Assembly: GCA_020891255.1 (NCBI GenBank)
Contig: BQFW01000001.1
Coordinates: 2,418,001-2,482,000 of the forward strand
Direction of reading: 5' to 3'
Length of the DNA stretch: 64,000 nt
Source: Entomortierella parvispora E1425
Lineage: Eukaryota; Fungi; Mortierellomycota
The notes under the pieces are model-generated. The model searched no databases. It saw nothing but the letters and a program-made list of their open reading frames with translations, and had not been told where the DNA came from. Each line of letters opens with the position of its first letter. Position 1 is the stretch's first letter. The position numbers and the translations under genes are program-made. Positions 33,909 through 58,590 of this stretch are shown in pieces.

Positions 33909-34753
33909 CAAACTGGCTGCACTGTGAGATGAAGGTATGGTCACGTAGACCGTGTCCTTCTAAGAGTTGGGTGACCATTGCAGTATCTGTGTCGAGGAAG
34001 TCTACCGGCCGGATCAATGTTCGCTTTTTACTTTACGTCTCCTTTGTAGAAGTAGACTGCCATTATCCCTCTTTTCTATTTCAAACTGGCTGCACTGTGA
34101 GATGAATATATGGTCATGTAGACCGTGTCCTTCTAAGAGTTGGGTGACCATTGCAGTATCTGTGTCGAGGAAGTCTACCGGCCGGATCAATGCTCGCTTT
34201 TTACTTTACGTCTCCTTTGTAGAAGTAGACTGCCATTATCCCTCTTTTCTATTTCAAACTGGCTGCACTGTGAGATGAAGGTATGGTCATGTAGACCGTG
34301 TCCTTCTAAGAGTTGGGTGACCATTGCAGTATCTGTGTCGAGGAAGTCTACCGGCCGGATCAATGCTCGCTTTTTACTTTACGTCTCCTTTGTAGAAGTA
34401 GACTGCCATTATCCCTCTTTTCTATTTCAAACTGGCTGCACTGTGAGATGAAGGTATGGTCATGTAGACCGTGTCCTTCTAAGAGTTGGGTGACCATTGC
34501 AGTATCTGTGTCGAGGAAGTCTACCGGCCGGATCAATGTTCGCTTTTTACTTTACGTCTCCTTTGTAGAAGTAGACTGCCATTATCCCTCTTTTCTATTT
34601 CAAACTGGCTGCACTGTGAGATGAAGGTATGGTCATGTAGACCGTGTCCTTCTAAGAGTTGGGTGACCATTGCAGTATCTGTGTCGAGGAAGTCTACCGG
34701 CCGGATCAATGTTCGCTTTTTACTTTACGTCTCCTTTGTAGAAGTAGACTGCC
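33909..34753. repeat. Tandem array of a 173-bp unit, about 4.9 near-identical copies
   Basis: Units start at 33909, 34082, 34255, 34428 and 34601. They differ at only a few positions (cacgt/catgt, gaagg/gaata, atgtt/atgct). Confidence 0.97.
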
Positions 34754-34759
34754 TTTATC

Positions 34760-35746: not shown

Positions 35747-37436
<1,690 letters not shown>

Positions 37437-38559: not shown

Positions 38560-40882
38560 ATGACAGCTGTCGACAGAGTCAACGCTCTGACATCTGAAGA
38601 GAGGGGCCAGGTCGATAGTCAGGAGGCCAGCCCCTCAACACCAGACTCCAAGAAGGAAGGAGCTGCGGCCATCCCTGGCTTTACAGATCAAAGCCGCGTA
38701 TTACCACGAAAAGAGCTGGCTGCAGTTTTTGCTGGGTGAGTGCATCTTCAGCAGCAGAGGAGGGCAGGAAGTCTTCTTCCAATGGTGCTTCTTCACATTC
38801 CTGGTAGTTGCTTGTGAAGCTAGCTGAGCGAAACCCCACTCAACTCAACACTCTTTTTTAGTCTTTGTATTGTTCTCTTCATGGCCAGTTTGGACCAGGT
38901 AACGCCATGTGGCGTTGTTTTTGTCTTCAACCGTCTTTGATCAAAGTCCGCTCATGATCCTTATTTTTTTTTTCTTTACCCGGAATTGCCCTTCTCTAGA
39001 CTATCGTTTCGGTGTTGACTCCAACCTTGGGCAAGACCTTCAATGCTCCACAGTACATTGCATGGGTTGGAACAAGTTACTTGCTCACATCAACATCCAT
39101 GCAGCCTTTATATGGAAAACTGAGTGATATCTTTGGAAGGTGCGTCGGGCACCTCGCTTTCTGTTTTGCACTGGAACACTGAAGATTGGGAAACTAATCA
39201 GCCGAGCGCGTGTCATTCTTGTGGATCTTTTAGGAAAAATATGATTCTTTTTGCCATATTTTTCTTCCTTGTTGGCTCTCTCGTGTGTGGCGCTGCCCCT
39301 TCCATCATCGTGTTGGCTATTGGTCGCGGAATTGCGGGTATTGGAGCCGGAGGCTTGATCGGATTGACCATGATTATCGTCTCGGATGTTGTGTCTCCAC
39401 GTGAGCGAGGGTACGAGTCCATTGCAGGCGAGAAAATGAGGCAATTGCTTGATAACATGATTTTTCCTTTGTGGCTCACCCAACTGTTTTTTTCTTCTCT
39501 TGGAATAGAAAATACCAGGGCATCATTGGCGCCATGTTTGGTCTGTCAGCAATCATTGGACCATTGTTGGGAGGTTTCCTTGCCGAGCACTCTACCTGGC
39601 GCTGGGCTTTTTACTTGAACTTGCCCTTGGGTGCTGTCAGTACCGTCGCCATGTTTTTCATTCTCAAGTTGCCTACGGTGAAGGGCAGCTATCGCCAGAA
39701 ACTCGGACGAGTGGATTTTCTGGGCTCGATTACGTTTGTGATTGGCATCATTTGCGTCCTGTTGTCGACCAACTGGGGTGGCAACGAGTACAGTTGGAGC
39801 AGCACTCAGATCATTGTGCCTTATTGTGTTGGAGCCGTGTTCATTGCCATTTTCTTGTTCATCGAGGCCAAAATCGCTGTCGAACCCATCTTGCCTTTCA
39901 GATTGTTCCGTAACCGATCTGTCTGCTCAACCTACGCCACTTCCTTTTTTATTGGAGGGTATGTTTACTCAGTGGTCTTTGCATTTCAAGAGCTGATGCA
40001 ACTGGAGTAACTCAAACATGGAAAACACGAACTTTTTTTTTTCTTTCTGTAGCGCCTTTCTCGGAGTCATTTTCTACTGTCCTCTCTACTTCCAGCTTGT
40101 CAAGCATTACTCGGCTACCCGATCTGGTCTTCAGCTCTTGCCTCTTGTCGGCGGTATGATGTTTGGAGGAATTGGCTCTGGCGTTCTTATCACCAAGACA
40201 GGACGCTATAGACCTTTCATTTGGACTGCCCTGGCCATCTACGTCGTCGGTGTGGCACTCTTGTCGCTCTGGGAACTGGATTCAAAGATGAATGTCCAGA
40301 TTGGATACCTGTTTGTTGTTGGCTTGGGTCTCGGAGGATGCATGCAGAGTGTGGTGTAAGTGCGCGAGATCCAGAGAAAGAAAAGTACATGTCGATCATT
40401 ACAAATGATGACTCGACCAACCCTACTAACAGCGGCTATTTCCTTGTCCTAACCATAGTCTTGCTGGGCAGAGTTCAGTTGGATTTGAGGATGTTGCTAC
40501 AGTGACGGCGACTCTTGCATTCTTCCGTTCGATGGGTGGAGTGGTTGGCGTTGCCATTGGCGGATCCTTGATCAACAACACGTTAACGAAACAAGGCGTG
40601 GACGCCAACAACTACAGGGATGTGTCTATGCATCCCGACAAGTACGCAATGGCTACTCAGGCAGTGTTCCGGATGTGTGTTGCCTGGCCTGCTCTCGCCC
40701 TGATTTCGTCCTTGTTCATTGAGCACTACGAGTTGCGCAAGAATGTCGGCGGCCGAGGTGCGGACACCAAAGTCAGTGAGAAGATCGAGGAGGTTTCTGG
40801 GATCCAGAGCGACGACGTGGGTCAGAAAATTGAAGTTCTGGTGGATGAAGAAAGGGAGAACCACGAAGAGCGCGAACAATAA
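38560..40882 (+). CDS. MFS drug:H+ antiporter, DHA2 (14-TMS) family, multi-exon
   Basis: FMASLDQTIVS, GKLSDIFGRK, RGIAGIGAGG, SPRERGKYQG, GPLLGG...WRWAFYLNLPLG and FFRSMGGVVG motifs. Confidence 0.93.
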
Positions 40883-41791: not shown

Positions 41792-42641
41792 TTATGAACA
41801 AGTCGACACGGCGGAAAGGTGGTCAGGAGATGGTGGCTGGGAGACATCTTGATTCAACCCACTGATCGCCGCTTCAATTCTTTCGCAGACCCTGCAAGAA
41901 GAGGCAAAAGCAATAAACACTGGCCAAATGAGGTTGCATGACTTCTGGTACTTGTGACCAAGGATTTGAACAGCGACATAACTGACCCCAGTGTTGTCCG
42001 GACGGGAGCGTGCCCAAACCAGGCTCAGAAGGGCCTCAGAGCTTGAGGTATCTTGAGTTCTGCGGTAAAACTTATTATAAAATTCAGTTTCGTTATTTGT
42101 TGCTAGATATTGTGTGGTTGTTGTTGTTATCACTGTTGAAGCTTTCGTTGTTGTTCCGGCTGCCTTGCCTATTCACCAGCTAGGAGGAGGGAACCCCCCC
42201 CCCCCAAGTGGGTCACATATGAGGGTGTGTGTGTGTGTATGTGCCAAACGGGTCAAAATATAACCAGATGGACCGTGACCGTGGTCAAGATTAGCAATGA
42301 CGAAGAGAAAGACTGATGGGTGCGCGCTGAGATGGCTCTGTCGACGGGTACTGTAGATGGTAAAGGAAGTCGGTATGGTGGGGATGCAGAGTTTCGTCAA
42401 TGGAGCATAGGTCGGAGGGTTAACAGAAGAGACGGCGATCGAAGCGGAGAAATCTTGGCCGAAGATTGGACGGGTAGATGGTGAAGGAAGACGGTATGGT
42501 GGGGATGCAGAGTTCCGTCAATGGAGCATAGGTCAGAGGTTTAACAGGAGAGACGGTGATCGAAGCGGAGAAATCTTGGCCGAAGATCGGACGGGTCCAG
42601 AGGGCGACTCCAGTCAGCAGGAGCGCGTGCAAAATTCGCAT
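41792..42641 (-). pseudogene. Putative secreted Ser/Thr/Pro-rich protein gene disrupted by an internal 121-bp tandem duplication
   Basis: Signal-like MRILHALLLTGVALWTRPIFG. The second copy shifts the frame to a stop at 42420. A possible phase-1 intron would join the single-copy frame to the Thr-rich ORF 41792-42133. Confidence 0.45.
42355..42596. repeat. 121-bp tandem duplication, 2 copies, 8 substitutions
   Basis: Copies at 42476-42596 and 42355-42475, aligned by eye. Confidence 0.95.
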
Positions 42642-43151: not shown

Positions 43152-44531
43152 TTTTCTTTTCTTTAAGTTCTGCGATGATCTGTATGGTCGATTGCCCGCA
43201 TCATTGTGCACTGAATGCATTTTCTTGCCATTTGCACATGACACTTTATCAGGCGGGCTTCATATTCCATTCGCTCATGAGAGGCTGCTTCTTTTGTTCC
43301 ACCATAGCATAGCACTGTTACCTAAACGACCGGAGGGGGCTTTTCGCTTGATCATTCAGCCCTCGAGAGTTCAGCTACGAGGGCCAAGGCTTCTATAGTA
43401 GGCGTGACGAATGAGGGAGGGGGGATCTTCGATCACAGTCCCTTTTTTTTTATACCTGACCAATGCCACCTGGCGCCCAACCAGAAATTGGCTTTTAGAA
43501 TGGCCAAATTGGCCTTGACGGGAGCCGGGTCATGGGAGGCACACTGCCTGCAGCGGGATGAGAACAAAGCGGTAGGATTGGCCGGAACGGCTGCGCCGGC
43601 TGTGGATATATCCGAGTTTTCACAGCATGCATGAAAGTTTGGTTGCTCCTTGTAGTCTATTTTGCCCTTTGACTGCGAGTGTTTTTGTGCTACCATGGGC
43701 GAAAAAAATCAATTCAATCCCTTTGGACCTTTACCGCAGGTGTGGCCTGTGGGTCTCATGAACCTTTTCGAGCGTTGGGATTGTGAGCCGGGGGGAGAAC
43801 AAACATCCGGCAACATAATCAGGGATCATCGCTTTAGATCATTGGTCTAGTGATTTTAGTCCTAATCCTCTTCAGGGTGTGGGAAAAAGGAGTCCAAGCA
43901 TGCATGCAGAGGGAAGGGAAGCGAAAAAAGGATCAGCCGAACGAAAAAAACAAAAAAAAGTACCTGCGTTTGGATTGAACGGACGACCATCGTCATGGAC
44001 ACCTCCCAAGTCCATTGTTGCCTTGGGTGCCCACGCTTTTACTACCCCACATCACCAGTCAACGTCGATAACCACAGGCCCACTCGAGGTCATTGGTTGC
44101 CTAATCCCTCTCCACTTCCCCACATCACTGCTGGCTGTTCTTTCTTCCCGTCGCAACCACACCTCAACTTTGTATATAAACCCTGCCCTCCTCCTCCTCT
44201 TGTGGATCTTCATCTCTCCAAATTCAACTCTTCAACACCTTCCCTACCACAACTCCTCCCCTTTGCGCCCTATCTCCCTCCCTCAGCGACTAGTCCGTCT
44301 CTGCTGTCTCTGCCCACCAAACTCTGTCCAACAAGTCTCTCAAGAACCGTTCACACCTCCCTCTATCCAAAGCCTTCTTCAGAACTCTTTGTAAGGACAA
44401 CTACATAGGAAGTGTAGGCATGTATTTCTATGGAACTTCGCCCTTACTAAATCGATTGACCTTGTTCATAGTAGTTCTATCCGATCTCATTACCCCAAAC
44501 CCAACAAGTCTTCAAGAAAACAAGAAAAAAA

Positions 44532-46397
44532 ATGTGCGGAATCACCGGTTGGTTGTCCTATGATCAAAACCTCGAGCATCAGCGTGAGGTTCTCCAGAAA
44601 ATGACTGAAACCATGGCGTTGCGTGGACCAGACGCTCATGGTCTTTGGATCGACGGACCCGCCGCTGTGGGTCATTGCCGTCTCTCAGTCATCGATCTGG
44701 AAGGTGGTCGTCAGCCCATGGTGGAAAAGCTCGATAGCCAGAAAGACGTGGCCGTCATCACCTACTCTGGCGAGGTCTACAACTTCAAGGAGTTGCGTGA
44801 AGAACTCAAGGCCGAGGGCTACCACTTCAACACCTCCAGTGATACCGAGGTTGTGTTGAAGGCCTATGTTGCATGGGGCGAAGACTTTGTCTACAAGCTC
44901 AACGGAATGTTCGCCTTTGCCATCTGGGATGTCCGTACTCAGGAGATGATTCTGATCCGCGACCGATTGGGCATCAAGCCTCTTTACTACTACCGAACCC
45001 ATGATGGCGTTATCTTTGGCTCCGAGCCCAAGGCGATCTTGGCCAACCCATTGGTTCCCCGCCGCGTCACAGCCCAGGGTCTGCGCGGCATCCTCCAAAT
45101 GGTTAGAGTGCCAGGCTACGCGGTCTTTGCCGGCATGCGCGAGGTGATGCCTGGTGAGATCGTGAGAATCAACCGCCAGGGTATTGTCAACCGCCACTAC
45201 TGGCGCTTGGAAGCACGCAAGCACGAGGACAACCTCGAGGATACTATCAAGAACACCCGCGCTCTCTTGGACGATATTTTGGCACGCCAGATCATTGCCG
45301 ATGTCCCTCTCTGCAGTTTGCTGTCGGGCGGTCTCGACTCTTCCATCATCACCTCGCTCGCCTCGAAGAAGCTCCTCGAAAGTGGCAAGGGCAACATCAA
45401 CTCGTTCTCGGTTGATTTCATCGACCACGGAGCCGAGTTCGTGAGCGATGACATCCGCGGCACCAGGGATGCACCATTTGTCAAGGATCTGGCTGAGCAC
45501 GTCCACACAAACCACAGAGATGTTGTGTTGGACAGCCGTGAATTGGCCGGTCCAGTTCTGCGCACCAAGGTCATCCACGCTATGGATATGGCTATTGTCA
45601 ATGGAGACATGTATCCTTCCTTGTACTGCCTGTTCGAGGAAGTGAAGCGTCACTCCACCGTGGCCCTCTCTGGAGAGGGCGCGGATGAGATCTTTGGTGG
45701 ATACAAATGGTTCCATGATGAAGATGCGGTGTCTGGAAAGGGTTACCCTTGGATGAACCTCTCCAGTCGCAAGTTTTTTGAAGGCAAGAGCCTGCTCAAG
45801 CGCGATTTGCTCGAAAAGCTGGACCTCGAGAACTTCATCAAGAAAGACTACGAGCGGGCTCTGTCAGAGGTGCCTATCCTTCCCGGCGAAAGTGTTGAGA
45901 ACCACCGCATGAGACAGATCGTCTATCTCCACGTCACCCGCTTCTTGTGCATCCTTCTGGACCGCAAGGACCGCATGAGTATGGCCGTGGGACTTGAGGT
46001 GCGTGTGCCTTTCCTTGATCATCGTCTGGTCGAGTACGTCTACAACATCCCCTGGGACATGAAGACTTTTGACGGCAGAGAGAAGAGTATCTTGCGCGCT
46101 GCTGGTCGTGATTTGCTGCCCAACTCCATCGTGGAGCGAGTCAAGTGCCCTTACCCATCAACACAAGATCCAGCTTACGAAATCGAGTTGCGCGCTGCCT
46201 TGGCCAAGATCATGGAGGATGAGAAGGCACCCGTCAGACCTCTCCTTGATGACAAGGCTGTCAAGGAGACTCTGGCGAGAGAGGTGGGTGTCTCTTCTCT
46301 CCCCTATGACCGTATTGCCATGGACTTGGTCGTTTACTTGAACTCTTGGTTGGTCGACTACAATGTCACTCTGGATCTCGATGAGAGAGAGAACTAA
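44532..46397 (+). CDS. asnB: Bacterial-type asparagine synthase (glutamine-hydrolysing) family amidotransferase, AsnO/PhzH/OxyD-like, intronless, 621 aa
   Basis: N-terminal Cys (MCGITGW), RGPD, GHCRLSVIDLEGGRQPM, RDRLGIKPLYY, SGGLDS, SGEGADEIFGGY and LDRKDRMSMAVGLEVRVPFLDHRLVE. Confidence 0.92.
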   Translation: MCGITGWLSYDQNLEHQREVLQKMTETMALRGPDAHGLWIDGPAAVGHCRLSVIDLEGGRQPMVEKLDSQKDVAVITYSGEVYNFKELREELKAEGYHFNTSSDTEVVLKAYVAWGEDFVYKLNGMFAFAIWDVRTQEMILIRDRLGIKPLYYYRTHDGVIFGSEPKAILANPLVPRRVTAQGLRGILQMVRVPGYAVFAGMREVMPGEIVRINRQGIVNRHYWRLEARKHEDNLEDTIKNTRALLDDILARQIIADVPLCSLLSGGLDSSIITSLASKKLLESGKGNINSFSVDFIDHGAEFVSDDIRGTRDAPFVKDLAEHVHTNHRDVVLDSRELAGPVLRTKVIHAMDMAIVNGDMYPSLYCLFEEVKRHSTVALSGEGADEIFGGYKWFHDEDAVSGKGYPWMNLSSRKFFEGKSLLKRDLLEKLDLENFIKKDYERALSEVPILPGESVENHRMRQIVYLHVTRFLCILLDRKDRMSMAVGLEVRVPFLDHRLVEYVYNIPWDMKTFDGREKSILRAAGRDLLPNSIVERVKCPYPSTQDPAYEIELRAALAKIMEDEKAPVRPLLDDKAVKETLAREVGVSSLPYDRIAMDLVVYLNSWLVDYNVTLDLDEREN

Positions 46398-47447
46398 GTC
46401 GGTTAGGGCATTCAATCAACTGCAGAAAAATATTAGAACGAATAAAGAGAACTTTTTTTTGTTGTGCTTCGTGTGGACCCGTGTCGAGCCGAAATCTTTT
46501 CCTGTTGAAATGACTTTTGCCTGGGCACAGTTTTTTTTATTGAGGTAGACTAGCATTCGAATGGGGATATTAGAGTTGACTCGTGCTTGTTCTTTCATCG
46601 CCACTAAGGTCGCTCGTGTATTTATTGACGGGTGATTCTTGTGCACCAACATGTCTGATTTCTCGAGACTGCCCCAACAGTTTCCAGCCATGTCCGCATC
46701 CGACTTTGTGCTGCGTTCGACAGTGTTCCTTTGCTTTCAAGAAGCTTGACAACATCTTATCGCGCCAACATCTTCTTGACGATTATAAGCAGCTGTTTGT
46801 GAACTCTGGCGCACAGACTCGACGCGCTCCGCAAAACTTTGTTCGAACCTTTCCCGCGTTTATTTTTTTTTTTTTTTTTTTTTTTTGATGAATCGCTTCT
46901 TCTTAGGTGGCAAGTGAACGAGTTAGATCGTGGGTGGAATTTGAACGCTACTGGTTGAGTGGAGGGAAGCGAAAGCAGTCAGAGGAGTTGGTGAGGATGG
47001 AGAACCGACACAGATATTTGACAAATAGAATAGAGCTAGCTGTGTGAATCAAGCACACTGTCGGCCAGAACAATTATTGCGAGTGGAAATAACGGATTGA
47101 GAAATATACATCACGTGCGCTAAACAGTACGGTGACGTAAACGATGCATGGATATAACGGCTTGATCTGTCTGTTGTGTGCCGTGCCCCCCAGTGGCGAG
47201 ACACACACACTGTGCGCCGCGCATACTCTGGAAGGGACGCCTCCATCGTCGACCTTCTTCTCTCTCTTTACGCACTGCATCCGAGGACACATCCCCATCC
47301 TCTTGCTCTTCATTCTCCCCCTCTCTCTTTCATTCATCAACCTCCCCTCACGCCCCACCTCCACCCCGTTCCCCTTCCCCTACATCTCATCTCTCAGGCA
47401 AATCACCAGTAAAAAGATCTCGATTGGATTCTCTTTTTGTAAGCAGA

Positions 47448-47492
47448 TCAGCAATCGGCAATCAGCAATCAGCAATCAGCAATCAGCAATCA
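47448..47492. repeat. Microsatellite (TCAGCAA)6 in the Brr2 5' region
   Basis: Directly visible; one unit is TCGGCAA. Confidence 0.9.
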
Positions 47493-47958
47493 CTCCTCTT
47501 TACCTTGACTCGCATCACTTTCTTCATCGACCAAGTATCTAACACAAACCTATCCTTGACCTTGCCCTCACATCCACTCCAGCCCTGTGATTGTCACGAC
47601 TGCAGCAACAAGACACCTGTGCCATTTGCTCTACCGGATCGCGTCGACAGCTGTCAATTACCAGTCTAGCGGTAAGCAGGAGAATGCAGACGAAACTGTA
47701 GTTGCTTCTCATGTCGTCACATTTCAAGTACCTCTGTCTAACGCTACCTCCTTAACCCTGCCCTTGTAGGTATCCCTAAATCGGATCAGTTCAGCGGCCG
47801 TTACTCTTCAAGTTCTTTTTTGGGTCCAACGTTCAACTGTTTCCCCTTGTAACAACAGTAAGACCCTCTACAGGAACAGACCCAAAGGGACCAGCGCTGG
47901 TGCTTCGCATATTCTAACATTTTTTTGTCCTTGCCTTCGTAGTCCATATATCATCACC

Positions 47959-50900
47959 ATGGCTGACAAAGTGGCAAAGGACCAGCAGTACCAATATGCT
48001 CTGAACTCCAACTTGGTTCTTCAGTCGAGCCGTTCTGATAATCCTCGCCGAGGAAATGAACCCACTGGAGAGGCCGAGTCTTTGTATGGTCGTATTGATC
48101 CCAAAGATTTCGGTAGCCGCGCTATGAGAGATACCTCAAAAGTGGATGAGGCGAAGAAGAAAAAGACCGAGACAAGCGAAAAGGATATTGAGAGGCGCAG
48201 GAAAAGAAACGAGGAAAAAACCTTGAGAAACGCCTACGGATTTTCGTCTGTTCTTGCCGCAACAGAGGATCTCGAAAGCGGTGGATACAGACCCAGGACA
48301 AAGGAAACCAGGCATACCTACGAGCTCATCTTGACCTTTGTCCAGCAGTACCTCGGAGATGTTTCACACGAGATTGTGCGCAGTGCTGGAGACACCGTTT
48401 TGCAAACCCTTCACAACCCCAATCTCAAGGACTTTGACAAAAAGAAGGAGATCGAGGATATCCTTGGACCCATCAAATCCGACAAGTTCTCAGATCTGGT
48501 GGCTCTTGGCAAGAAGATTACAGATTATGCTACCGGCACCGAGGAAATGAGTGTCGATCAGGATGGCGAGCTGAAGAATGTCGGAGACATTGACGAACAA
48601 TATGGTGTCGCAGTCGTTTTCGACGAGGAAGAGGAGGAAGAGGATATCTACTCACTTCACTCGGATTCCGAACACGAGGACGATGAGGGTGGACTGGAGA
48701 CAACTCAGGATGTCGTTGTTGGCGCCGGAAAGTCTGCTGAGGGTGAAGAAGAGTCAATGGAGGTTGATGAGGACGAGGCTGTCCGCGTTGGATCTACCAG
48801 CACCAAGGTTGACATGTCCAAGAAGTTGCAACCACATCAGGTCGATGCCTATTGGCTTCAGCGTTTCATTGCCACCTTCTACCAGGATGAGATTGTCGCA
48901 CAGGAAAAGTCGGATGCCGCCATGGCAATCATTTCATCAGAGGCAAACACTCGCGACTGCGAAAACGAGTTGGTGTCTCTTTTCGACTTTGACAAGTTTG
49001 ACTTGATCAGCATGTTGACCAAGAACAGAGAAGTCATTGTCTGGTGCACAAAGCTCGGAAAGGCCAATGATCAGGAGCGTACTGAGATTGAGAGCAGGAT
49101 GAAGGATCTCGGTTTAGACTGGATCATTAAGGGACTTGGCCATCAAACCGGTGCCAAGTCAGATCTTCGCCGTCGTGGTGCAGGTCAAGCGCCTATTGCT
49201 GCAGGACCCATGGCTGTCCTTCCAAAGGAAAAGGGACCAGCCCCAGCGACATCGGCTCCTCGTCAACTCGTCGACCTTGAAGCCATGTCTTTTGCCCAAG
49301 GATCTCACTTGATGTCCAACAAGCAAGTTCATATTCCTGGAGCCTTCCGTCGTCAAAAGAAGGGATACGAGGAAGTCCATGTCCCTCAGCCCAAGAAGCC
49401 CTCTGAGGACCGCAAGAGGATCCCACAGGCAGATCTTCCTCAGTGGATCCAGCAGGCTTTCCCTCACGGACTGAACCAAATTCAGAGTGTTGTCTACGAC
49501 GTTGCCTATGGATCGGACGAAAATATGCTCCTGTGTGCCCCCACTGGTGCTGGTAAAACCAACTGTGCCATGTTGACCGTCCTCCACGAGATTGAGAAGT
49601 ACCGTGACCCAAGAACCGGAGTGATCGACAAGGAATCGTTCAAGATCGTCTATATTGCGCCCATGAAGGCCTTGGTTCAGGAAATGGTTAAAAACTTTGG
49701 CGACAGGCTTGAGCCCTTTGGCCTCTCAGTTCAGGAATTGACAGGAGATCGACAGATGAACAAGCAGCAGATCGCCGAAACGAACATGATTGTCACAACT
49801 CCCGAAAAGTGGGATATTATCACTCGCAAGGCTACGGACAGGAGTTACACCAACCTTGTGCGTCTCATCATCATTGATGAAATTCACTTGCTGCACGATG
49901 ACCGTGGTCCCGTCTTGGAGTCGATTGTGGCGCGTACTCTTCGCGGCATGGAGCAAAGTCAGGAGTTGATCCGTCTTGTTGGACTTTCTGCCACCTTGCC
50001 AAATTACATCGACGTCGCCACCTTCTTGCGTGTAGATACCAACCGTGGTATGTTCCACTTTGATGGCTCTTGGAGACCTTGCCCCCTTAAGCAGGAGTTC
50101 ATCGGTATCACAGAGAAGAAGGCCATCAAGCGTTTCCAGGTCATGAATGAAGTCACATACGAGAAGGTGATGGAGCACGTCGTCCAACCTGAGGGCGACC
50201 AAGTTTTGATCTTTGTCCACTCGCGAAAGGAGACTGCCAAGACTGCCCAGGCTTTGCGTGATATGGCATTGGAGAAGGACACCATCACACATTTTGCTCG
50301 ACCTGATGGCGGCGCCCGTGAGATTTTGCTGGCTGAAGCCGAGCTTTCCAAGGATGCTGCCCTCAAGGATCTTCTGCCTTATGGTTTCGCTACCCATCAT
50401 GCTGGTATGACACGTGATGATCGTCAAGTTGTGGAGGAATTGTTTCTCGCAGGACATATCAAGGTCCTCTGCTCGACTGCTACCTTGGCCTGGGGTGTCA
50501 ATTTGCCTGCCCACACTGTCATTATCAAGGGAACCCAGGTTTACTCCCCTGAGAAGGGTCGATGGGCCGAGTTGTCTCCTCAAGACGTTCTCCAGATGTT
50601 GGGTCGTGCTGGTCGACCCCAGTTCGACGAATTCGGAGAAGGTATCATCATCACGACTCACTCCGAACTTCAGTACTATCTGTCGCTCCTCAACCAACAG
50701 CTTCCTATCGAGTCGCAATTTGTATCAAAACTTGCCGACAACCTCAATGCTGAAATTGTTCTCGGAACAATCAAGAACCGTGACGAGGCTGTTCAGTGGC
50801 TCGGATACACTTACCTCTATGTCCGTATGCTCCGCAATCCAATTCTTTACAGCATCTCGCACGACGACATGGAAGACGACCCATATTTGCAAAAGAAGCG

Positions 50901-53900
50901 TGTCGACATTGTTCACTCTGCAGCCACTATCTTGGACAAGTGCAACATGATCAAGTACGACAAGCGCACAGGAAAGTTCCAGGGAACTGAGCTTGGTCGA
51001 ATTGCCTCCCATTACTACATCTCGCACAACTCAATGTCGACCTACAACCAGCATTTGAAGCCGATGATGTCGCATATTGAGCTTTTCCGTGTGTTCTCTC
51101 TCAGTGACGAATTCAAATATATCCCTGTCCGTGAGGAGGAGAAGGCCGAACTTCAAAAGTGGCTCGAGCAAGTCCCCGTCCCTATCAAGGAGAGTATCGA
51201 GGAGCCAACTGCCAAGATTAATGTCCTTCTGCAATCGTATATTTCTCAACTCAAGCTGGAGGGCTTTGCACTAGTCAGCGATATGGTTTACGTGACCCAG
51301 AGCAGTGGACGTATTCTCCGAGCCATCTTTGAGATTTGTCTTCGTCGCGGATGGGCTCAGTTGACCCGCAAGGCCTTGGACCTCTGCAAGATGGTAGAAA
51401 AGAGACAATGGCTGTCCATGACCCCTCTTCGTCAATTCAAGGCCATCAACCCCGAGCTGATCAAGAAGATTGAGCGCAAGGAGTTTGACTGGGTTCGTTA
51501 CTTTGACTTGACTTCGCAAGAGATTGGAGAGTTGGTCGGTGTTCCTAAAGCCGGAAAGTTGCTCGAGAAATTTGTTCACGAGTTTCCCAAGCTGGATCTT
51601 CAGTCGCATGTCCAGCCCCTGACTCGCTCTATTCTCAAGGTTGAGCTCACCATTACCCCCGACTTCAAGTGGGACGAGAAGGTGCACGGAACAGCAGAGG
51701 CTTTCTGGATTTTGGTCGAGGATGTTGACGGCGAGATGATTTTGCATCAGGAATCTTTTATTTTGAAGCAGCAGTACGCCGAAGAAGAGCATTTGATGAC
51801 CTTCACTGTACCTCTTTTCGACCCTCTTCCACCAAACTACTTTGTCAGCATCGTATCGGATCGTTGGCTTCACTCAGAGACTCGCTTCCCTATCTCGTTC
51901 AAGCATCTCATCTTGCCCGAGAAGTACCCACCTCATACAGAACTCTTGGATCTCCAACCTCTCCCCGTCACTGCTCTCCGCAACCGCGAGTTTGAGGAGA
52001 TCTTCTCCAAGACTGTTGTAAAGTTCAACCCCATCCAGACTCAGGTTTTCAACTCTCTCTATGCTCAGGACGATAATGTGTTTGTTGGCGCACCTACCGG
52101 CTCCGGAAAGACTATCTGTGCCGAGTTTGCGATGATGCGTCAGTGGAACAAGAAGCCTGTAAAGGGAGCACCTAAGGGTCGCATCGTTTATATCGCCCCC
52201 CATCAGGAAGTCGTGGATGCCCGTCGTCAGGAGTGGCATGCCAAGTTTGGAGATATTCAAGGAGGCAAGACCATTGTTGCCCTGACAGGAGAGGCAACTG
52301 CTGATTTGAGGTTGCTCGAACGTGGAGATGTCATCTTGGCCACCCCTGGTCAGTGGGATGTCCTCTCTCGCAAATGGAAGCAGCGCAAGAATGTCCAGAC
52401 TGTTCAGCTCTTCATCGCCGATGAGCTTCACTTGATCGGAGGAGACATTGGTCCAACCTACGAAGTCATCGTTTCACGCATGCGTTACATTGCCTCGCAG
52501 GTCGAAAGCAAGATTCGCATCGTTGCTCTCAGCACATCGTTGGCGAACGCGCGTGATCTTGGAGAGTGGATCGGAGCCTCGTCGCACTCGGTATTCAACT
52601 TCCATCCCATGGTGCGCCCATTGCCCTTGGATGTTCATATTCAAAGCTACACGATCCCTCACTTTGCATCCTGGATGATTGCCATGGCCAAGCCTACGTA
52701 TGCTGCTATTACTACCCATTCTGCCGAAAAGCCCGTCATTGTCTTTGTGCCTTCCCGCAGGCAGTGCCGCCTCACTGTAAAGGATTTGGTGACATTCTGT
52801 GTTGCTGATGATACTCCTAACCGCTTCCTCCATTGCGACCAAGACGTTTTGAATCAGCATTTGGAGCACGTTCAGGACAAGTCTTTGGTTGCGTCTTTGG
52901 AGCACGGAATCGGATTCTATCACGAGGCTCTGAGCAAGGGTGACAAGCGTGTGGTCGAGAAGTTGTTCGAGAGCGGAGCTATCCAGGTGGTGGTCGCCTC
53001 CAGAGATACATGCTGGGGCATTCCTTTGAGCGCCTACATGGTCGTTGTGATGGGAACGCAGTACTACGATGGAAAGGACCATCGCTATGCCGACTACCCA
53101 ACCACGGATATTCTTCAGATGATGGGCCGTGCCTGTCGCCCCCAGGAGGACGAGTCAAGTCGCTGTGTGCTCATGTGCCAGTCTAACCGCAAGGAGTTTT
53201 ACAAGAAGTTCTTGTTTGAGGCGTTGCCCGTGGAATCGCATCTGGACCACTTTTTGCATGATCATTTCAATGCCGAGATCGTGACAAAGACGATTGAGAA
53301 CAAGCAGGATGCTGTTGACTATCTCACCTGGACATTCCTTTACCGTCGCATGGCTCAGAACCCCAACTACTACAACTTGCAAGGAGTGACGCATCGTCAC
53401 CTTTCGGATCACTTGTCAGAGTTGGTCGAGACGACTATCAACGACTTGGTGACGTCCAAGTGCATTGCTATCGAGGACGAGATGGACGTGTCACCACTGA
53501 ACCTGGGTATGATTGCAGCCTACTACAACATCAACTTCTCGACCGTGGAGTTGTTCAGTTCCAGTTTGACGCCCACGACCAAGCTGAAGGGACTTTTGGA
53601 GATTATCTCGACCGCAGCTGAGTTCGAGACAATCCCTATCCGTCACCACGAGGACCAGGTGTTGAAGCGAATCTATGACCGTTTGCCAGTCAAGCTGAAC
53701 CACGTCAAGTTTACGAGCCCCCATCACAAGGCCAACATCTTGTTGCAAGCACACTTCTCGCGCACTCAACTTCCCCCAGATCTCGCCTCTGACCAGGCTC
53801 TGGTGGTGGGTCAGGTGATTCCATTGTTGCAGGCCTGCGTGGATGTGATTTCGTCCAACGGATGGTTGCCACCAGCCTTGGCAGCCATGGAGTTGGCGCA

Positions 53901-54513
53901 GATGTGTGTCCAAGCCGTGTGGGACCGCGACTCTGAGTTGAAGCAGATCCCATACATGACCGAGGAGCGTATCAAGCGTTGCGAGGCCAAGGGTGTTGAG
54001 GGCGTATTTGATATTCTGGAGATGTCGGACAAGGACCGCGACTCTTGCTTGCAGGTGGATGAGCGCCAGATGCGTGCTATTGCAGGATTCGTCAACCGTT
54101 ACCCCAGTGTTGAGGTTGCCTACAATGTTGAGGACGAGGACGATATCAAGGCCGGTCAACCCACTGTGGTCCATGTGCAGTTGGAGCGTGAGGGCGATGA
54201 CGAGGAGCTGACGAGTGTCCCTGCACCATTCTTCCCCACCAAGAAGGATGAAGCCTGGTGGATTGTGGTGGGTGATCCTGCTACCAAGACCCTGTTGGCC
54301 ATCAAGAGGGTGACACTGCAGCGCAAGTTGAATGTCAAGTTGGAGTTTGTGTGCCCCCGTGTGGGCCAGCAGACGTTCAAGCTGTTCACGATGTGCGACA
54401 GTTTCCGAGGTGTCGATCAAGAAATTGACATGGAGTTGAATGTTGCCGAGGGCGAGGATGACAGTGAGGAGGAAGAAGAGGATGAGGATGGTGATGTTGA
54501 GATGGCAGAGTAG
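47959..54513 (+). CDS. BRR2: U5 snRNP 200-kDa helicase Brr2/SNRNP200, intronless CDS, 2184 aa
   Basis: Two Ski2-like cassettes (APTGAGKT/DEIH and APTGSGKT/DELH), each followed by a Sec63 unit. Conserved N-terminus YALNSNLVLQ. Confidence 0.99.
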   Translation: MADKVAKDQQYQYALNSNLVLQSSRSDNPRRGNEPTGEAESLYGRIDPKDFGSRAMRDTSKVDEAKKKKTETSEKDIERRRKRNEEKTLRNAYGFSSVLAATEDLESGGYRPRTKETRHTYELILTFVQQYLGDVSHEIVRSAGDTVLQTLHNPNLKDFDKKKEIEDILGPIKSDKFSDLVALGKKITDYATGTEEMSVDQDGELKNVGDIDEQYGVAVVFDEEEEEEDIYSLHSDSEHEDDEGGLETTQDVVVGAGKSAEGEEESMEVDEDEAVRVGSTSTKVDMSKKLQPHQVDAYWLQRFIATFYQDEIVAQEKSDAAMAIISSEANTRDCENELVSLFDFDKFDLISMLTKNREVIVWCTKLGKANDQERTEIESRMKDLGLDWIIKGLGHQTGAKSDLRRRGAGQAPIAAGPMAVLPKEKGPAPATSAPRQLVDLEAMSFAQGSHLMSNKQVHIPGAFRRQKKGYEEVHVPQPKKPSEDRKRIPQADLPQWIQQAFPHGLNQIQSVVYDVAYGSDENMLLCAPTGAGKTNCAMLTVLHEIEKYRDPRTGVIDKESFKIVYIAPMKALVQEMVKNFGDRLEPFGLSVQELTGDRQMNKQQIAETNMIVTTPEKWDIITRKATDRSYTNLVRLIIIDEIHLLHDDRGPVLESIVARTLRGMEQSQELIRLVGLSATLPNYIDVATFLRVDTNRGMFHFDGSWRPCPLKQEFIGITEKKAIKRFQVMNEVTYEKVMEHVVQPEGDQVLIFVHSRKETAKTAQALRDMALEKDTITHFARPDGGAREILLAEAELSKDAALKDLLPYGFATHHAGMTRDDRQVVEELFLAGHIKVLCSTATLAWGVNLPAHTVIIKGTQVYSPEKGRWAELSPQDVLQMLGRAGRPQFDEFGEGIIITTHSELQYYLSLLNQQLPIESQFVSKLADNLNAEIVLGTIKNRDEAVQWLGYTYLYVRMLRNPILYSISHDDMEDDPYLQKKRVDIVHSAATILDKCNMIKYDKRTGKFQGTELGRIASHYYISHNSMSTYNQHLKPMMSHIELFRVFSLSDEFKYIPVREEEKAELQKWLEQVPVPIKESIEEPTAKINVLLQSYISQLKLEGFALVSDMVYVTQSSGRILRAIFEICLRRGWAQLTRKALDLCKMVEKRQWLSMTPLRQFKAINPELIKKIERKEFDWVRYFDLTSQEIGELVGVPKAGKLLEKFVHEFPKLDLQSHVQPLTRSILKVELTITPDFKWDEKVHGTAEAFWILVEDVDGEMILHQESFILKQQYAEEEHLMTFTVPLFDPLPPNYFVSIVSDRWLHSETRFPISFKHLILPEKYPPHTELLDLQPLPVTALRNREFEEIFSKTVVKFNPIQTQVFNSLYAQDDNVFVGAPTGSGKTICAEFAMMRQWNKKPVKGAPKGRIVYIAPHQEVVDARRQEWHAKFGDIQGGKTIVALTGEATADLRLLERGDVILATPGQWDVLSRKWKQRKNVQTVQLFIADELHLIGGDIGPTYEVIVSRMRYIASQVESKIRIVALSTSLANARDLGEWIGASSHSVFNFHPMVRPLPLDVHIQSYTIPHFASWMIAMAKPTYAAITTHSAEKPVIVFVPSRRQCRLTVKDLVTFCVADDTPNRFLHCDQDVLNQHLEHVQDKSLVASLEHGIGFYHEALSKGDKRVVEKLFESGAIQVVVASRDTCWGIPLSAYMVVVMGTQYYDGKDHRYADYPTTDILQMMGRACRPQEDESSRCVLMCQSNRKEFYKKFLFEALPVESHLDHFLHDHFNAEIVTKTIENKQDAVDYLTWTFLYRRMAQNPNYYNLQGVTHRHLSDHLSELVETTINDLVTSKCIAIEDEMDVSPLNLGMIAAYYNINFSTVELFSSSLTPTTKLKGLLEIISTAAEFETIPIRHHEDQVLKRIYDRLPVKLNHVKFTSPHHKANILLQAHFSRTQLPPDLASDQALVVGQVIPLLQACVDVISSNGWLPPALAAMELAQMCVQAVWDRDSELKQIPYMTEERIKRCEAKGVEGVFDILEMSDKDRDSCLQVDERQMRAIAGFVNRYPSVEVAYNVEDEDDIKAGQPTVVHVQLEREGDDEELTSVPAPFFPTKKDEAWWIVVGDPATKTLLAIKRVTLQRKLNVKLEFVCPRVGQQTFKLFTMCDSFRGVDQEIDMELNVAEGEDDSEEEEEDEDGDVEMAE

Positions 54514-54798
54514 AAGAATGAACAGAGTAATGCCGTTCTCAATCGCCTTGTAGTTTGTTTTGCTATCATTATTATTATCATAAAAAAGCAGTTTTTCACA
54601 ATCGTCACTGGACTTGACTTCAGAAGTGTTGCAGAGCCACGATGGTGGTGGAGAGATGGACCAAGGCTGATCCAGAGGAGAAAAATTGGTGGCGAACCAT
54701 CTGGCGTGATCGCTGGGTCTGTGCACTCGTGGTCTCTTTTGTTTCCATCCTGCTTTGATACTCCTGTCGGTCCTTTCTTCTTCACTTCAACTCACCCA

Positions 54799-56691
54799 AT
54801 GAATAACAGATCTACTCCATCCTTGCTCGAACTGCCTCCAGAAATCCTGAGCATGATCGTTTCCCTTCTAAGCAGACATGATCTTGCCGTCTGCGTGCGG
54901 GTCTGTAGGTCTTTCTACGACGCTCTCATGGACAGTCTCTGGCACACGGTCGAGGTGAACAACATTTCTGGCTACAATGTCAAACAGCCAGCCTTTTATC
55001 GTGGTAACTCACTCAACAACCCTGAGCCCGCCATTCGCAGCCCTGAAACCATGTCAACATGGTCGCCCTCTCTCGGCAATCTATATCGGACTCGTATCTT
55101 AAAAGTCCAGAATCCTATCTTTCTTGACCTGTTCTGGGAACAGGGAGCATCGCCGCTCCATGCGATTCCGCTCCAGGAATTCAGTATTCACCTTAAAGGT
55201 GCTAGGCACTCACTCTCACCTTGTCTGGCTGAGGGTAGTTATCCTTATCTGCTATCCGCCGCCTTTGAGAACCCTGAACTTGTGACCATGGAGAACATCC
55301 ACTATTTCCGTCACTGGATATCCCAGTCAGCATTGCAACTCCCCAAATCTGTCAACATGGAGGCCATCCTTCAGAAGGTTCAACGATCTCTCATTCCTCC
55401 ACCCCAACTCCCCCCACCCTACATGCAGGCCATCCTTCAGATCCTTGGAAGATCAAACCAGCTTTCTACCTTTTCCATCACTACAGACTCCTTATCAAAC
55501 AAAATGAAGATCCACGATCAAGCACGGCTGCTGGCAAGTCTCCCGGCAACTTTACAAAAGCTCAATACGACATCGACAAGCGCACAACTTTGGCACGTGC
55601 ACCCAAGCGATGAACAGCGAGCCAAAGCTTGGGACCTCATAGGAATGAAAAAGGGTGGTTTTGAAAACCTGACGTCGCTGTCGATCGTGCGGGCGACTGT
55701 ACTGGTTGACCTCCTACCAGCTCTGCTAAAGTATTCTCCAAAACTCAAGGAGCTCATTGTGGATGGAAAGTGCGGGCTTACTAAAAAGGGCGCTTACAAC
55801 TATGCCAATGGGAACTTTGAAATGGATTGGTTTGAATCCAGGGGCTGGAAAACTCTAGGATTTGTAAGTCTCTATGAGCCGACAGTCAAGTCGCTCCGTG
55901 TGGCGGTCATCTTGCAGGACGGCGCGACTCTTGTAAACGTTCGAATCACGGCCTGCAGGGCATTTGACAGCAATTCGATCCAGAAACTGCTATGCTCCGC
56001 GCCAAACCTCAAGCGGTTCGATTGCATCATTGGACACTGCATCCCTGGCGAACTGGAGCCCTATTCGCTTATGGCTATGGATATTGCCGAATCCAAAGAG
56101 GAGTGGGTCTGCCTTGGATTAGAGACGTTCAAGTGTTATATCGGAGGAGTCCCAAGGCCAGATATCACCTCCATGAAGAACGGTCGGCCGCTCAACGGAA
56201 TCTATAATGACGGCACTAGATTCTCGGCGTTCAAAAGTCGTAAAATTCAACGTGTAGTCTTGGCTCAGCTGGGTCGACTTACCAGACTCCGAGAGATCAC
56301 ACTTGGAAAGGACGTTGTCGACATCTCGGGTGGCCGCTATCGTTCAATTGAACGGAACATGGAAGGCATATATTACTCTGAGGGCTCTACGTATGAGTAT
56401 GAGCTGGGGTCTCAGTACCAATGTCTGACCATGTCTCTTCAAGATGGATTGGACGAATTGAGAAATCTCAAGTGCTTGAGAAGGTTGACCCTTGAGAAGA
56501 TGAGTATCAGCATCGGCGAGGCGGAACAGAGGTGGATGAAGAACAACTGGCCAGAATTTGGAAAGAAGTCTAGGGATACCTTTTGGACATCCAGGGGGTT
56601 CTCTGTTGCCATTGGCACTACCCTGCTACATGAAAAGTACAGGGATTGCGACGAAGAGCAGAAGGCGCTTGAAGAGTACGACTGGTGGTAA
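54799..56691 (+). CDS. F-box/LRR-like protein, copy 1 (intact, 630 aa, intronless)
   Basis: F-box LLELPPEILSMIVSLLSRHDLAVCVRVCRSFY. C-terminal WVCLGLETFKCYIGG and QYQCLTMSLQDGLDELRNLKCLRRL. Confidence 0.88.
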   Translation: MNNRSTPSLLELPPEILSMIVSLLSRHDLAVCVRVCRSFYDALMDSLWHTVEVNNISGYNVKQPAFYRGNSLNNPEPAIRSPETMSTWSPSLGNLYRTRILKVQNPIFLDLFWEQGASPLHAIPLQEFSIHLKGARHSLSPCLAEGSYPYLLSAAFENPELVTMENIHYFRHWISQSALQLPKSVNMEAILQKVQRSLIPPPQLPPPYMQAILQILGRSNQLSTFSITTDSLSNKMKIHDQARLLASLPATLQKLNTTSTSAQLWHVHPSDEQRAKAWDLIGMKKGGFENLTSLSIVRATVLVDLLPALLKYSPKLKELIVDGKCGLTKKGAYNYANGNFEMDWFESRGWKTLGFVSLYEPTVKSLRVAVILQDGATLVNVRITACRAFDSNSIQKLLCSAPNLKRFDCIIGHCIPGELEPYSLMAMDIAESKEEWVCLGLETFKCYIGGVPRPDITSMKNGRPLNGIYNDGTRFSAFKSRKIQRVVLAQLGRLTRLREITLGKDVVDISGGRYRSIERNMEGIYYSEGSTYEYELGSQYQCLTMSLQDGLDELRNLKCLRRLTLEKMSISIGEAEQRWMKNNWPEFGKKSRDTFWTSRGFSVAIGTTLLHEKYRDCDEEQKALEEYDWW

Positions 56692-56921: not shown

Positions 56922-58590
56922 ATGAAGAATGCAGACTCTCCCACTCTGGCCACACTCCCTCCTGAGATACAGGGTATGATTACCCCCCTTCTCTCCAGGC
57001 ACGATTTCTACAGCTGCGTGCGGGTCAACACAGCCTGGTACAGCGTTTTCATAGACAGTCTTTGGCACACGGTCGATTTGAGAGATGAATCCTTTGACGA
57101 AACGTGGCCGGTCTTTGACCGTATCAAGTCACTCTACGGCCCTTACCTTGTGCCCCAAGACAAACATGTCATGGTAACAAAGTCGCCCTTTCTCCGAAAT
57201 CTTCATCGAATCCGAGTCTTGAACGTGCAGTATGCAAGCTTTATGAACCTCTTCCTCGATCAGAGTTCATCGTCGCTCGAGGCAATTCAGCTTGAGGAAC
57301 TCAGTGTCGGTCTTGAAGTTGATCCGAGACCGCCTAGAAAGGTTTTGAACCCTTCTGGGCGTAGTTATACAATTGTTCAAACAACAATGGGGCCGTCCAG
57401 TCACACAGACATTGGGGTCACCCTTCAGATCATTGGCCGATCACCTCGTCTTTCTGCGTTTTCCTTTGCTGTGAAAGCTCTGTCTTGTCCAGGAGATCAG
57501 GCCCGTTTGCTCGCAAGTCTTCCCTCCAGCTTGGAAAAACTGAACACGATCCCTTATTCAGACTCCACTGTCCATCACAAGAACGCCGATCAAGACCCGA
57601 AAATCAAAAGCATGGACCTCTTCCTGGAACTGAGGAAGGGGGTTGGTTTTGAAAATTTAAAGTCGCTGTCGATATCAGCCAAACCTATCGAACTGACACT
57701 TTTGACGGCTCTAATGGATCGTTCGCCGAAGCTGGAAGAGCTTACTTTGTGCGAATTGCAACATGGCGCCTGGAACGACTCTGTAGTGGCGTATGTTTTG
57801 TCAAGAAGGCCACCCAATGGCTGGAAGACTTTGCGGTTCTTGACTGAAGTTGACAGAGTGGTCGGACCTCTCACCGTAGCAGCCACACTGCAGAACAGTT
57901 CGACTCTGGAAAACATTCAACTGTCAAACTGTGAGGAGTTTGACAGCAACGTCATCCAGAAGCTGCTGTGTTCCGCGCCAAACCTCAAGCGATTTGATGC
58001 TATTTCGAACTTTATCCCCGCAAGCTCTGAGGATTTTTCGATAATGGCTATGGATCTTGCTGAATCTAGACAAGAGTGGGTTTGCCTCGGATTGGAGACT
58101 TTCGTGTTATATCGGAGGAGTTCCAAGGCCGGATATTGTCAAGGCAAGAGTTGGTCGGCCTCTCTATTCAAGTTACAACAGCGACAGATATTCCATGCTC
58201 CAAAGTCATGAAGTCCAACGAAGAGTTCTATCGAAGATTGGTCGCCTCACCAAACTTCGGGAGATTGCTTTTGGGAGCGAACGACAAGCCGAGGAGAACT
58301 GGCACGATGAGACTGTTCTGGGGGAGGATGCGTGGTGGGAGGAAGAGGAGGAGAATGAATTAGATGAAGAGGAGCTACGGGGCTTTTGGGACGAATTTGG
58401 GAATCAGTACCAATCGCTCACCATGTCTCTGCAGGATGGACTGGACGAACTGAAGGATCTCAAGTGCCTGCGTAAGCTGACCCTTGGGGGCATGAGCCTC
58501 AATATAGGTGAAGCGGAGCGGGTGTGGATGAAGGAGAACTGGCCAGAGTATGATCCCAGTCGGCCAAAGCGCGATGACTGGACGGAGTAG
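56922..58590 (+). pseudogene. F-box/LRR-like protein, copy 2, frameshifted
   Basis: F-box LATLPPEIQ. Relative to copy 1 (TTC AAG TGT), 2 nt are missing at about 58103 (TTC GTG T). The homologous C-terminus continues in the 58057-58590 frame. Confidence 0.8.

Follow-up and report, generated by a model that had tools for sequence, protein, structure and literature searches.

The asparagine synthetases AsnB and Asn1 combine an N-terminal nucleophile (Ntn) glutaminase with adenylation by a PP-loop domain and an ammonia tunnel. Asn74 of AsnB, which lies in the NGEIYN motif, has an oxyanion-hole role, and Bacillus enzymes of the AsnO type can support asparagine synthesis. The same two-domain build, with MCG at the N-terminus, is found in TsnB9 and SaHAT (PDB 7ylz), which belong to the trichostatin and benzohydroxamate pathways of Streptomyces; SaHAT, a TsnB9 homolog, acts on free benzoic acid with ATP/Mg (PMC13418202). 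Here we describe a gene of this superfamily in a fungus. At positions 44532 to 46397 (plus strand) of a 64,000-nt stretch of the Entomortierella parvispora E1425 genome (assembly GCA_020891255.1, contig BQFW01000001.1, positions 2,418,001 to 2,482,000; the whole stretch is called the window), an open reading frame (ORF) encodes a bacterial-type glutamine amidotransferase of 621 aa that likewise begins with MCG.

Bacterial xenologs are common in this fungal lineage. Those described by Ciach et al. 2024 from early-diverging fungi (PMC11291939) are metabolic enzymes with intronless coding regions that show duplication and partial decay and have gradually gained features of fungal genes. The present gene resembles them in each of these respects and differs in that the probable intron gain lies in the 5′ untranslated region (UTR) and is common to all copies. 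From the analyses below, we consider it very likely that the gene is a xenolog, acquired in one transfer from a Pseudomonas-like soil proteobacterium by the ancestor of several Mortierellaceae lineages and then domesticated.

Architecture of the protein and its closest relatives

The ORF is intact in a single frame and the coding sequence (CDS) is intron-free. Its N-terminus reads MCGITGWLSYDQNLEHQREVLQKMTETMALRGPD, the opening residues of the 621-aa protein being MCGITGWLSYDQ. The motif YSGEVYN occupies aa 78–84 and the C-terminal motif RVKCPYPSTQDPAY aa 536–549, as an earlier note on this DNA, made from the sequence alone, had described. We delineated the following features within the gene.

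44532 to 46397, plus strand: CDS, with its stop codon, for the bacterial-type glutamine amidotransferase of 621 aa (ORF and profiles)
44535 to 44537, plus strand: codon of Cys2, N-terminal nucleophile of the glutaminase domain, as is established for the class II (Ntn) amidotransferases (Cys in all 201 family members)
44673 to 45044, plus strand: glutamine amidotransferase core, GATase_7, aa 48–171 (Pfam)
44763 to 44783, plus strand: YSGEVYN motif, with Ser79 at the place of AsnB Asn74 (family alignment)
45255 to 46289, plus strand: Asn_synthase (PP-loop ATP pyrophosphatase) domain, aa 242–586 (Pfam)
45324 to 45341, plus strand: PP-loop SGGLDS, aa 265–270 (family alignment)
45669 to 45689, plus strand: SGEGADE motif, aa 380–386 (family alignment; PMC6748925)

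In a profile scan, GATase_7 (PF13537) scored 157 bits against a cut-off of 25 and Asn_synthase (PF00733) 297 bits against 21. The general model TIGR01536, “asparagine synthase (glutamine-hydrolyzing)”, was passed with 502 bits (cut-off 267), and the AsnB equivalog NF006949 was failed with 288 bits (cut-off 499). The protein also stayed below the cut-offs of TIGR03104 (N-acetylglutaminylglutamine amidotransferase, 380 versus 570 bits), TIGR03108 (PEP-CTERM amidotransferase, 345 versus 817 bits) and NF033535 (lasso-peptide cyclase, 211 versus 525 bits). On these profile matches, the product is classed as a two-domain class II (Ntn) glutamine amidotransferase of the Asn-synthase family of PP-loop enzymes.

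Residue conservation was scored over 201 family members. Cys2, R50, G80, E81, D104, S380-G381-E382, D385, R478, R481, E489 and K538 were invariant, R50 and D104 representing the glutamine-binding Arg and Asp. Within the PP-loop S265–S270, the residues S, G, G, D and S were invariant as well, and L268 was Leu in all members but one, which has Ile. No Asn was found in the column corresponding to AsnB Asn74, which holds Ser in 160 members, Thr in 31, Val in 7 and Cys in 2; YSGE therefore characterizes the subfamily as a whole. At columns with a conservation of 90% or more in Proteobacteria, the fungal sequences show just six replacements of their own, all of them conservative. Because there are so few, the fungal enzyme most likely has the same activity as its Pseudomonas relatives, as far as residue conservation can indicate.

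The closest solved structure is 7ylz, annotated as “hydroxyamidotransferase”, which was matched over the full length (E = 3.9e-162, ~50% identity). E. coli AsnB (1ct9) and human ASNS (6gq3) gave patchy matches only, with E-values from 4e-44 to 4e-33. This agrees with the placement in a small-molecule amidotransferase subfamily suggested in the earlier note. With TsnB9 and SaHAT the fungal protein shares Ser at the Asn74 place, the PP-loop, SGE(G/A)ADE and the C-terminal KSPYPSTQD block. It differs from them in falling into a proteobacterial clade rather than with actinomycete sequences of similar distance. Moreover, no amide-oxygenase partner was seen by the fungal gene, so that plain glutamine is probably the nitrogen donor. 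The catalytic Cys, Arg and Asp, SGGLDS and the Glu348 equivalent are common to AsnB, Asn1 and the fungal protein, but the latter is ~60 residues longer, has Ser79 for Asn74 and a different C-terminal region.

A canonical ASN1 with several exons exists elsewhere in the host genome, on contig 2. Its product starts with MCGIFAIFN and carries SVNGEIYN, bearing out the motif contrast with fungal Asn1 that had been drawn previously, and a fragment of it reached 590 bits with the AsnB model, whose cut-off is 499.

Phylogenetic placement and likely donor

We searched 5.8 billion proteins for homologs and inspected the 120 best matches. The only eukaryotes among them were Mortierellaceae, at 66–81% identity, led by Podila verticillata (81%), Gryganskiella cystojenkinii (80%) and two Linnemannia zychae proteins (71% and 70%). 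One match of 68% identity comes from a contig on which the fungal leader described below is also present, and is therefore another Mortierellaceae copy. The protein cluster of one of the matches added Haplosporangium bisporale and more Podila strains. The next matches were Gammaproteobacteria at 62–66% (Stutzerimonas, Pseudomonas, Xenorhabdus, Enterobacter and Salmonella), followed by actinomycetes at 58–59%. No eukaryote outside the Mortierellaceae appeared among these 120 matches, within the bounds of what the protein collection contains.

Three trees were calculated: a FastTree of 200 rows, a quick IQ-TREE run and a careful IQ-TREE run under LG+C20+F+G4 with posterior mean site frequencies (77 rows, 617 columns). 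AsnO, PhzH and OxyD were left out of the tree. All three agreed on the topology. In the careful run, the eight fungal rows formed one clade (support 99/99, stem 0.068), which was joined at 100/99 with a sister group of 13 rows that includes Pseudomonas chlororaphis, P. fluorescens, P. piscis and P. nunensis, Pantoea/Rosenbergiella and Phyllobacterium. Both together lie within a clade of 48 rows that is otherwise proteobacterial (100/100, stem 0.25) and is itself nested in actinomycete grades. The fungal copies are thus nested in bacteria and do not join a broad eukaryotic clade, a grouping that, according to the earlier note, would have spoken against a transfer.

The earlier note had hinted at a Burkholderiaceae endobacterium as the source. 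Mortierellaceae do harbor Burkholderiaceae endobacteria. Transfers from endosymbionts to Mortierellomycota are, in addition, reported by Ciach et al. 2024 (PMC11291939). In contrast, the sister group of the fungal clade consists of Pseudomonas, Pantoea and Phyllobacterium relatives, no Burkholderiaceae name occurs in the 80 named loci or in those rows of the 120 best matches that bear a name, and the sole betaproteobacterium, Chromobacterium, falls into a distant clade. Judged from this placement, the donor looks Pseudomonas-like, and a Mycoavidus-like endobacterium of the Mortierellaceae is a very improbable source.

Gene neighborhoods of the bacterial orthologs

In Stutzerimonas, Xenorhabdus, four Pseudomonas genomes and one metagenome contig, the ortholog lies in an operon. 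A divergent gene for an MmyB-like regulator is followed by genes for a homolog of 5-aminolevulinate synthase (ALAS; TIGR01821, 536 bits), a GNAT protein, a Gfo/Idh/MocA oxidoreductase, the amidotransferase and a Cmx-like pump of the major facilitator superfamily (MFS). Two of the cassettes have a gene for ParA or for an IS110 transposase nearby. The same set of genes also exists in Marinactinospora and Streptomyces sp. SP18CS02.

These cassettes resemble the alaremycin genes almA/B/C/E, although the published alaremycin cluster has no amidotransferase (PMC12006855, PMC9356726); an “almD” amidotransferase, which we had considered, does not exist in it. By analogy, the cassette enzyme may amidate an alaremycin-like acid in the bacteria. 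Amidotransferases of these cassettes (in Pseudomonas, Stutzerimonas, Xenorhabdus and some actinomycetes) are 62–66%-identical orthologs from the same proteobacterial clade as the fungal protein, but they lie in operons, whereas the fungal gene is solitary.

Next to the fungal clade in the tree, the members of its immediate sister group have cassette partners other than the alaremycin-like set. In P. chlororaphis, these are genes for an HpaB-type monooxygenase, an M24 hydrolase, an SbnA-like pyridoxal-phosphate enzyme and a flavin reductase, then the amidotransferase and an MFS protein. The P. nunensis cassette comprises genes for an MFS protein, the amidotransferase, a KamA-like radical SAM protein, an MBL-fold protein, an NAD-binding protein (NAD_binding_9), a GST and a methyltransferase. 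In bacteria, the amidotransferase is thus an accessory module for tailoring that passes from one small-molecule cassette to another.

Chromosomal integration of the gene

The gene lies on contig 1, which is 2.94 Mb long, in an assembly of 38.9 Mb and 20 contigs. It is flanked by fungal genes on both sides, in agreement with the fungal-like flanks that had been noted before.

39124 to 40882, plus strand: multi-exon fungal gene for a TRI12/DHA-type MFS transporter, extent approximate (upstream context)
47959 to 54513, plus strand: intron-free gene for the spliceosomal helicase Brr2/SNRNP200, 2184 aa (BRR2_plug, PWI, two DEAD and two Sec63 domains)

Because Brr2 is also a single intron-free ORF, the lack of introns is only a weak sign of foreign origin here.

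In the independent strain X3, which comes from another sample and study and is ~5% diverged, positions 43502–46851 and 47063–48500 are both covered by one 22.5-kb Logan contig of normal depth. Since this contig carries both genes at genome depth, the join between the ORF and Brr2 is real; the continuity that the earlier note had wanted checked is thereby established, and a chimeric join is not seen. In the probable source run, the sole break falls at the simple repeat 46852–46895.

A third strain (X4/X5, with the same species label and a Brr2 5′ end that is ~90% identical) matches the window only from position 47172 rightwards. To the left of this point, its contig carries unrelated sequence over 4.3 kb, which suggests that strains differ in the presence or the location of the gene.

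Shared upstream region and predicted 5′-UTR intron

About 450–580 nt upstream of the ORF are shared among the fungal copies, and only ~50 nt downstream of it. Despite this common upstream block, the neighbor genes differ in every fungal species. Four features were assigned to the upstream region.

44173 to 44179, plus strand: TATA-like box TATATAA (in the conserved block TATATAAACCC of the window, Podila and Gryganskiella)
44180 to 44390, plus strand: predicted 5′-UTR exon 1, 211 nt, ATG-free, 5′ end approximate (conserved leader AACAAGTCTCTCAAGAACCGTTCAC)
44391 to 44471, plus strand: predicted 5′-UTR spliceosomal intron, 81 nt (splice signals in all fungal copies)
44472 to 44531, plus strand: predicted 5′-UTR exon 2, A-rich and ATG-free, up to the start codon (sequence)

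The TATA-like box, a candidate promoter element, is located 211–276 nt upstream of the predicted splice donor in the window, Podila and Gryganskiella. The exon 1 region aligns with the sequence upstream of the Podila, Gryganskiella and Linnemannia copies. The predicted intron has a GTAAGG donor, a branch-like TACTAA at 44445–44450 and a CATAG acceptor ending at 44471, with an alternative AG at 44473–44474; across the fungal copies, the donor consensus is GTAAG(T/G) and the acceptor YAG. Length variation between species is confined to the putative intron, which measures 81 nt here, ~150 nt in Podila and Gryganskiella and more in Linnemannia. Furthermore, of the ATGs in the ~350 nt that precede the start codon, none lies outside it (three copies parsed automatically, three by eye). 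The leader therefore very probably contains a spliceosomal intron, as predicted from these conserved signals. The gene had been called intronless before, which applies to its coding part and not to the transcription unit, for which the conserved 5′-UTR intron is predicted.

A Logan contig of 2.9 kb, the size of a transcript, had been considered as proof of splicing, but it retains the intron-like segment and hence represents genomic DNA. A search of the conserved leader against Rfam gave no credible structured RNA. In at least five genera, the ORF is found together with this unit of promoter and leader, although the loci differ.

Codon usage, selection and copy history

The codon usage of the ORF has shifted toward that of the host. 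Relative synonymous codon usage (RSCU) correlated with r = 0.78 between the ORF and host genes (Brr2 and two other host ORFs) and with r = 0.49–0.55 between the ORF and the Pseudomonas and Stutzerimonas orthologs tested; the correlation between host and P. chlororaphis was r = 0.29. The G+C content at third codon positions is 0.68 in the ORF and 0.61 in Brr2, ranging from 0.56 to 0.68 among the fungal copies and from 0.74 to 0.77 among the Pseudomonas and Stutzerimonas orthologs.

Pairwise comparison of six fungal copies (Nei-Gojobori) yielded ratios of nonsynonymous to synonymous substitution rates (dN/dS) of 0.14–0.26 over dS values of 0.3–1.4, which argues for long residence under purifying selection and is thus an indirect argument for function.

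We also identified a decayed paralog on contig 9 (377301–377960, minus strand). It covers only codons ~398–616, contains two frameshifts and two in-frame stops and shows ~69% nucleotide identity to the window gene. In the trees, this relic grouped within the fungal clade (97–99 in the Shimodaira-Hasegawa-like approximate likelihood ratio test, with X at the breaks), and it is therefore a decayed duplicate that arose after the transfer and no second acquisition. Linnemannia zychae has kept two intact copies. Upstream of its copy b, at a distance of 1.3 kb and on the opposite strand, lies an O-methyltransferase gene (Methyltransf_2), a pairing seen in this copy only.

Weighing a single transfer

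The nested position of the fungi is favored by a topology test, in which constraining 40 proteobacterial rows to a clade without the fungi cost 34.9 log-likelihood units (approximately unbiased (AU) test, p = 0.012). Several points weigh against one transfer followed by domestication. The group used in the AU test was chosen after inspection of the tree. The root was set by midpoint and by the choice of outgroup. The spread within the Mortierellaceae is patchy, and in the run of the third strain (X4/X5) the ORF had no match apart from a 44-nt stretch at SGEGADE, in a comparison that would miss sequence of less than 85% identity. This stretch belongs to ASN1, a paralog that is cross-matched in all read sets. 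Comparing the window flanks with five other fungal loci by tblastx and blastn, we found no neighbor common to the fungal species. The MFS gene of P. chlororaphis and the oxidoreductase gene of Stutzerimonas lack a meaningful match in the fungal genome. Finally, no RNA run contains the locus, and transcription, promoter and intron rest on prediction.

The sole rooting that separates the fungi from the bacteria lies on the fungal stem and needs loss of the gene in all other eukaryotes. The patchy spread and the unmatched third strain imply losses or later movement.

That no transfer took place at all, the gene being an ancient eukaryotic one lost nearly everywhere or else a bacterial contamination or chimeric assembly join, draws on the formal possibility of placing a monophyletic fungal clade outside the rest of an unrooted tree and on the intron-free coding part of the ORF, but is already contradicted by the lack of any further eukaryote among the 120 best matches, the nested position at 100/99 and 100/100, the 2.94-Mb contig, the joint presence of ORF and Brr2 on one contig of an independent strain, the fungal-type leader common to six or seven loci, the host-like codon usage and the fungal genes on either side, which together leave it next to no probability.

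A single transfer from a Pseudomonas-like bacterium would then have taken the following course. A gene for a class II amidotransferase of the TsnB9/AsnO type would have entered the Mortierellaceae ancestor once and gained a fungal promoter and leader, very probably including the intron. Its codons would have drifted toward host usage, and it would have been duplicated and relocated, the surviving copies remaining under purifying selection. In this regard, the view expressed at the outset, that of a bacterial-type gene acquired horizontally and ameliorated to a host-like codon bias, is supported by the homolog search, the maximum-likelihood trees and the codon data alike.

Putative mechanism and acceptor

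Because the catalytic residues are fully conserved, a mechanism in three steps can be proposed. The N-terminal Cys would hydrolyze glutamine to release ammonia, the PP-loop domain would adenylate a carboxylate with ATP/Mg, and the ammonia would attack the acyl-adenylate to form a primary amide.

Regarding the acceptor, a carboxylic acid that is a metabolite or xenobiotic appears somewhat likelier than aspartate. This preference follows from the bacterial members, which are accessory genes of cassettes beside an efflux pump, and from the fungus keeping its canonical ASN1.

Two observations count against a non-aspartate acceptor and speak for a gene of the same origin that encodes a second, AsnO-like asparagine synthetase supplementing ASN1. 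The TIGR01536 model was passed (502 versus 267 bits), which is compatible with asparagine synthesis. In human ASNS, Glu-364 and Asp-367, along with Glu-368, contact the α-amino and α-carboxylate groups of aspartyl-AMP (PMC6748925), and their equivalents are kept as E382, D385 and E386. However, this acidic cluster is also conserved in TsnB9-type enzymes, and we rejected it as a discriminator for aspartate. A second asparagine synthetase would also fit with the fungal gene traveling alone, without pathway partners, and with the ability of AsnO-type enzymes mentioned above. Against it stand the canonical ASN1 already present in the genome, the failed AsnB equivalog (288 versus 499 bits), the family-wide absence of Asn74, the cassette-linked accessory nature of the bacterial orthologs and a nearest characterized relative that makes no asparagine. 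On this evidence, we regard a supplementary asparagine synthetase as possible but the less probable of the two.

That the fungal enzyme acts as a TsnB9-type hydroxyamidotransferase, using glutamyl hydroxamate to turn a carboxylic acid into a hydroxamate, seems decidedly unlikely. The best match to a solved structure is indeed 7ylz, over its full length, and the Ser-for-Asn74 signature is held in common. But the identity is merely ~50%, the cassettes examined from the proteobacterial clade show no amide-oxygenase partner, and no TsnB6/7-like amide oxygenase adjoins the fungal copies, a genome-wide search for one not having been made.

Other features of the window

Upstream of the amidotransferase gene, an aldo-keto-reductase fragment was noted at 36894–37436 (plus strand). 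Neither this fragment nor the upstream MFS gene is related to the genes of the bacterial cassettes, and both are absent beside the other fungal copies. The TRI12-type MFS gene was also considered as a co-transferred partner and rejected, three bacterial MFS genes matching neither the window nor the fungal loci. Two ORFs for F-box-like proteins follow after Brr2 (54706–56691 and 56922–58211).

A tandem array at 33909–34759 consists of a 173-nt unit in 4.9 copies with 98% matches and gives rise to a series of 103-aa ORFs that overlap one another stepwise. In the intergenic region upstream of the gene (42353–42594), a 121-nt unit occurs twice in tandem, the two copies being 93% identical.

A mobile carrier was looked for at the borders of the unit of promoter and ORF and was rejected, as no repeats resembling transposable elements were found there and the flanks are single-copy. 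A purine-rich direct repeat of 18 nt (43909–43926 and 46957–46974, 16 of 18 positions identical, spacing 3048 nt) was tried as an insertion scar and dismissed as being at chance level, the estimated expectation being ~0.4 in 6.5 kb.

Novelty and significance

Full-text literature searches returned nothing on this gene in Mortierella, and it is unmentioned in the text and supplements examined of the survey of horizontal gene transfer in 44 genomes of early-diverging fungi (PMC11291939). The transfer thus appears to be unreported. New here are the shared promoter and leader with its predicted 5′-UTR intron, the relic on contig 9, the alaremycin-like cassettes that include an amidotransferase and the family-wide absence of Asn74. 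Alaremycin-type cassettes with the extra amidotransferase are common in Gammaproteobacteria and apparently undescribed in the searchable literature.

More speculatively, and in our view rather unlikely, the fungus may apply a tailoring enzyme of antibiotic pathways to small carboxylic acids, either neutralizing or modifying the acidic antimetabolites of rivals or making an amide or hydroxamate of its own. If so, acidic antimetabolites of neighboring Pseudomonas and Streptomyces, for instance alaremycin-like inhibitors of porphobilinogen synthase, would be masked as amides, and an ecological arms race would underlie the presence of the gene in some strains and its absence from others. As a side result, the alaremycin-like cassettes with the amidotransferase, which are widespread in Pseudomonas, Stutzerimonas, Xenorhabdus and enterobacteria, would represent a gene-cluster family not yet described.

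As a candidate ATP-dependent carboxylate amidase-synthetase, the protein is tractable, and its TsnB9-like subfamily currently attracts interest as a route to amides and hydroxamates. For the biology of the Mortierellaceae, the gene points to soil-dwelling Pseudomonas-like donors, not to endosymbionts. It is a clean example of a bacterial gene turning fungal, in which the shared leader unit, the duplicate in one species and the decayed relic in another provide a dated series for studying domestication.

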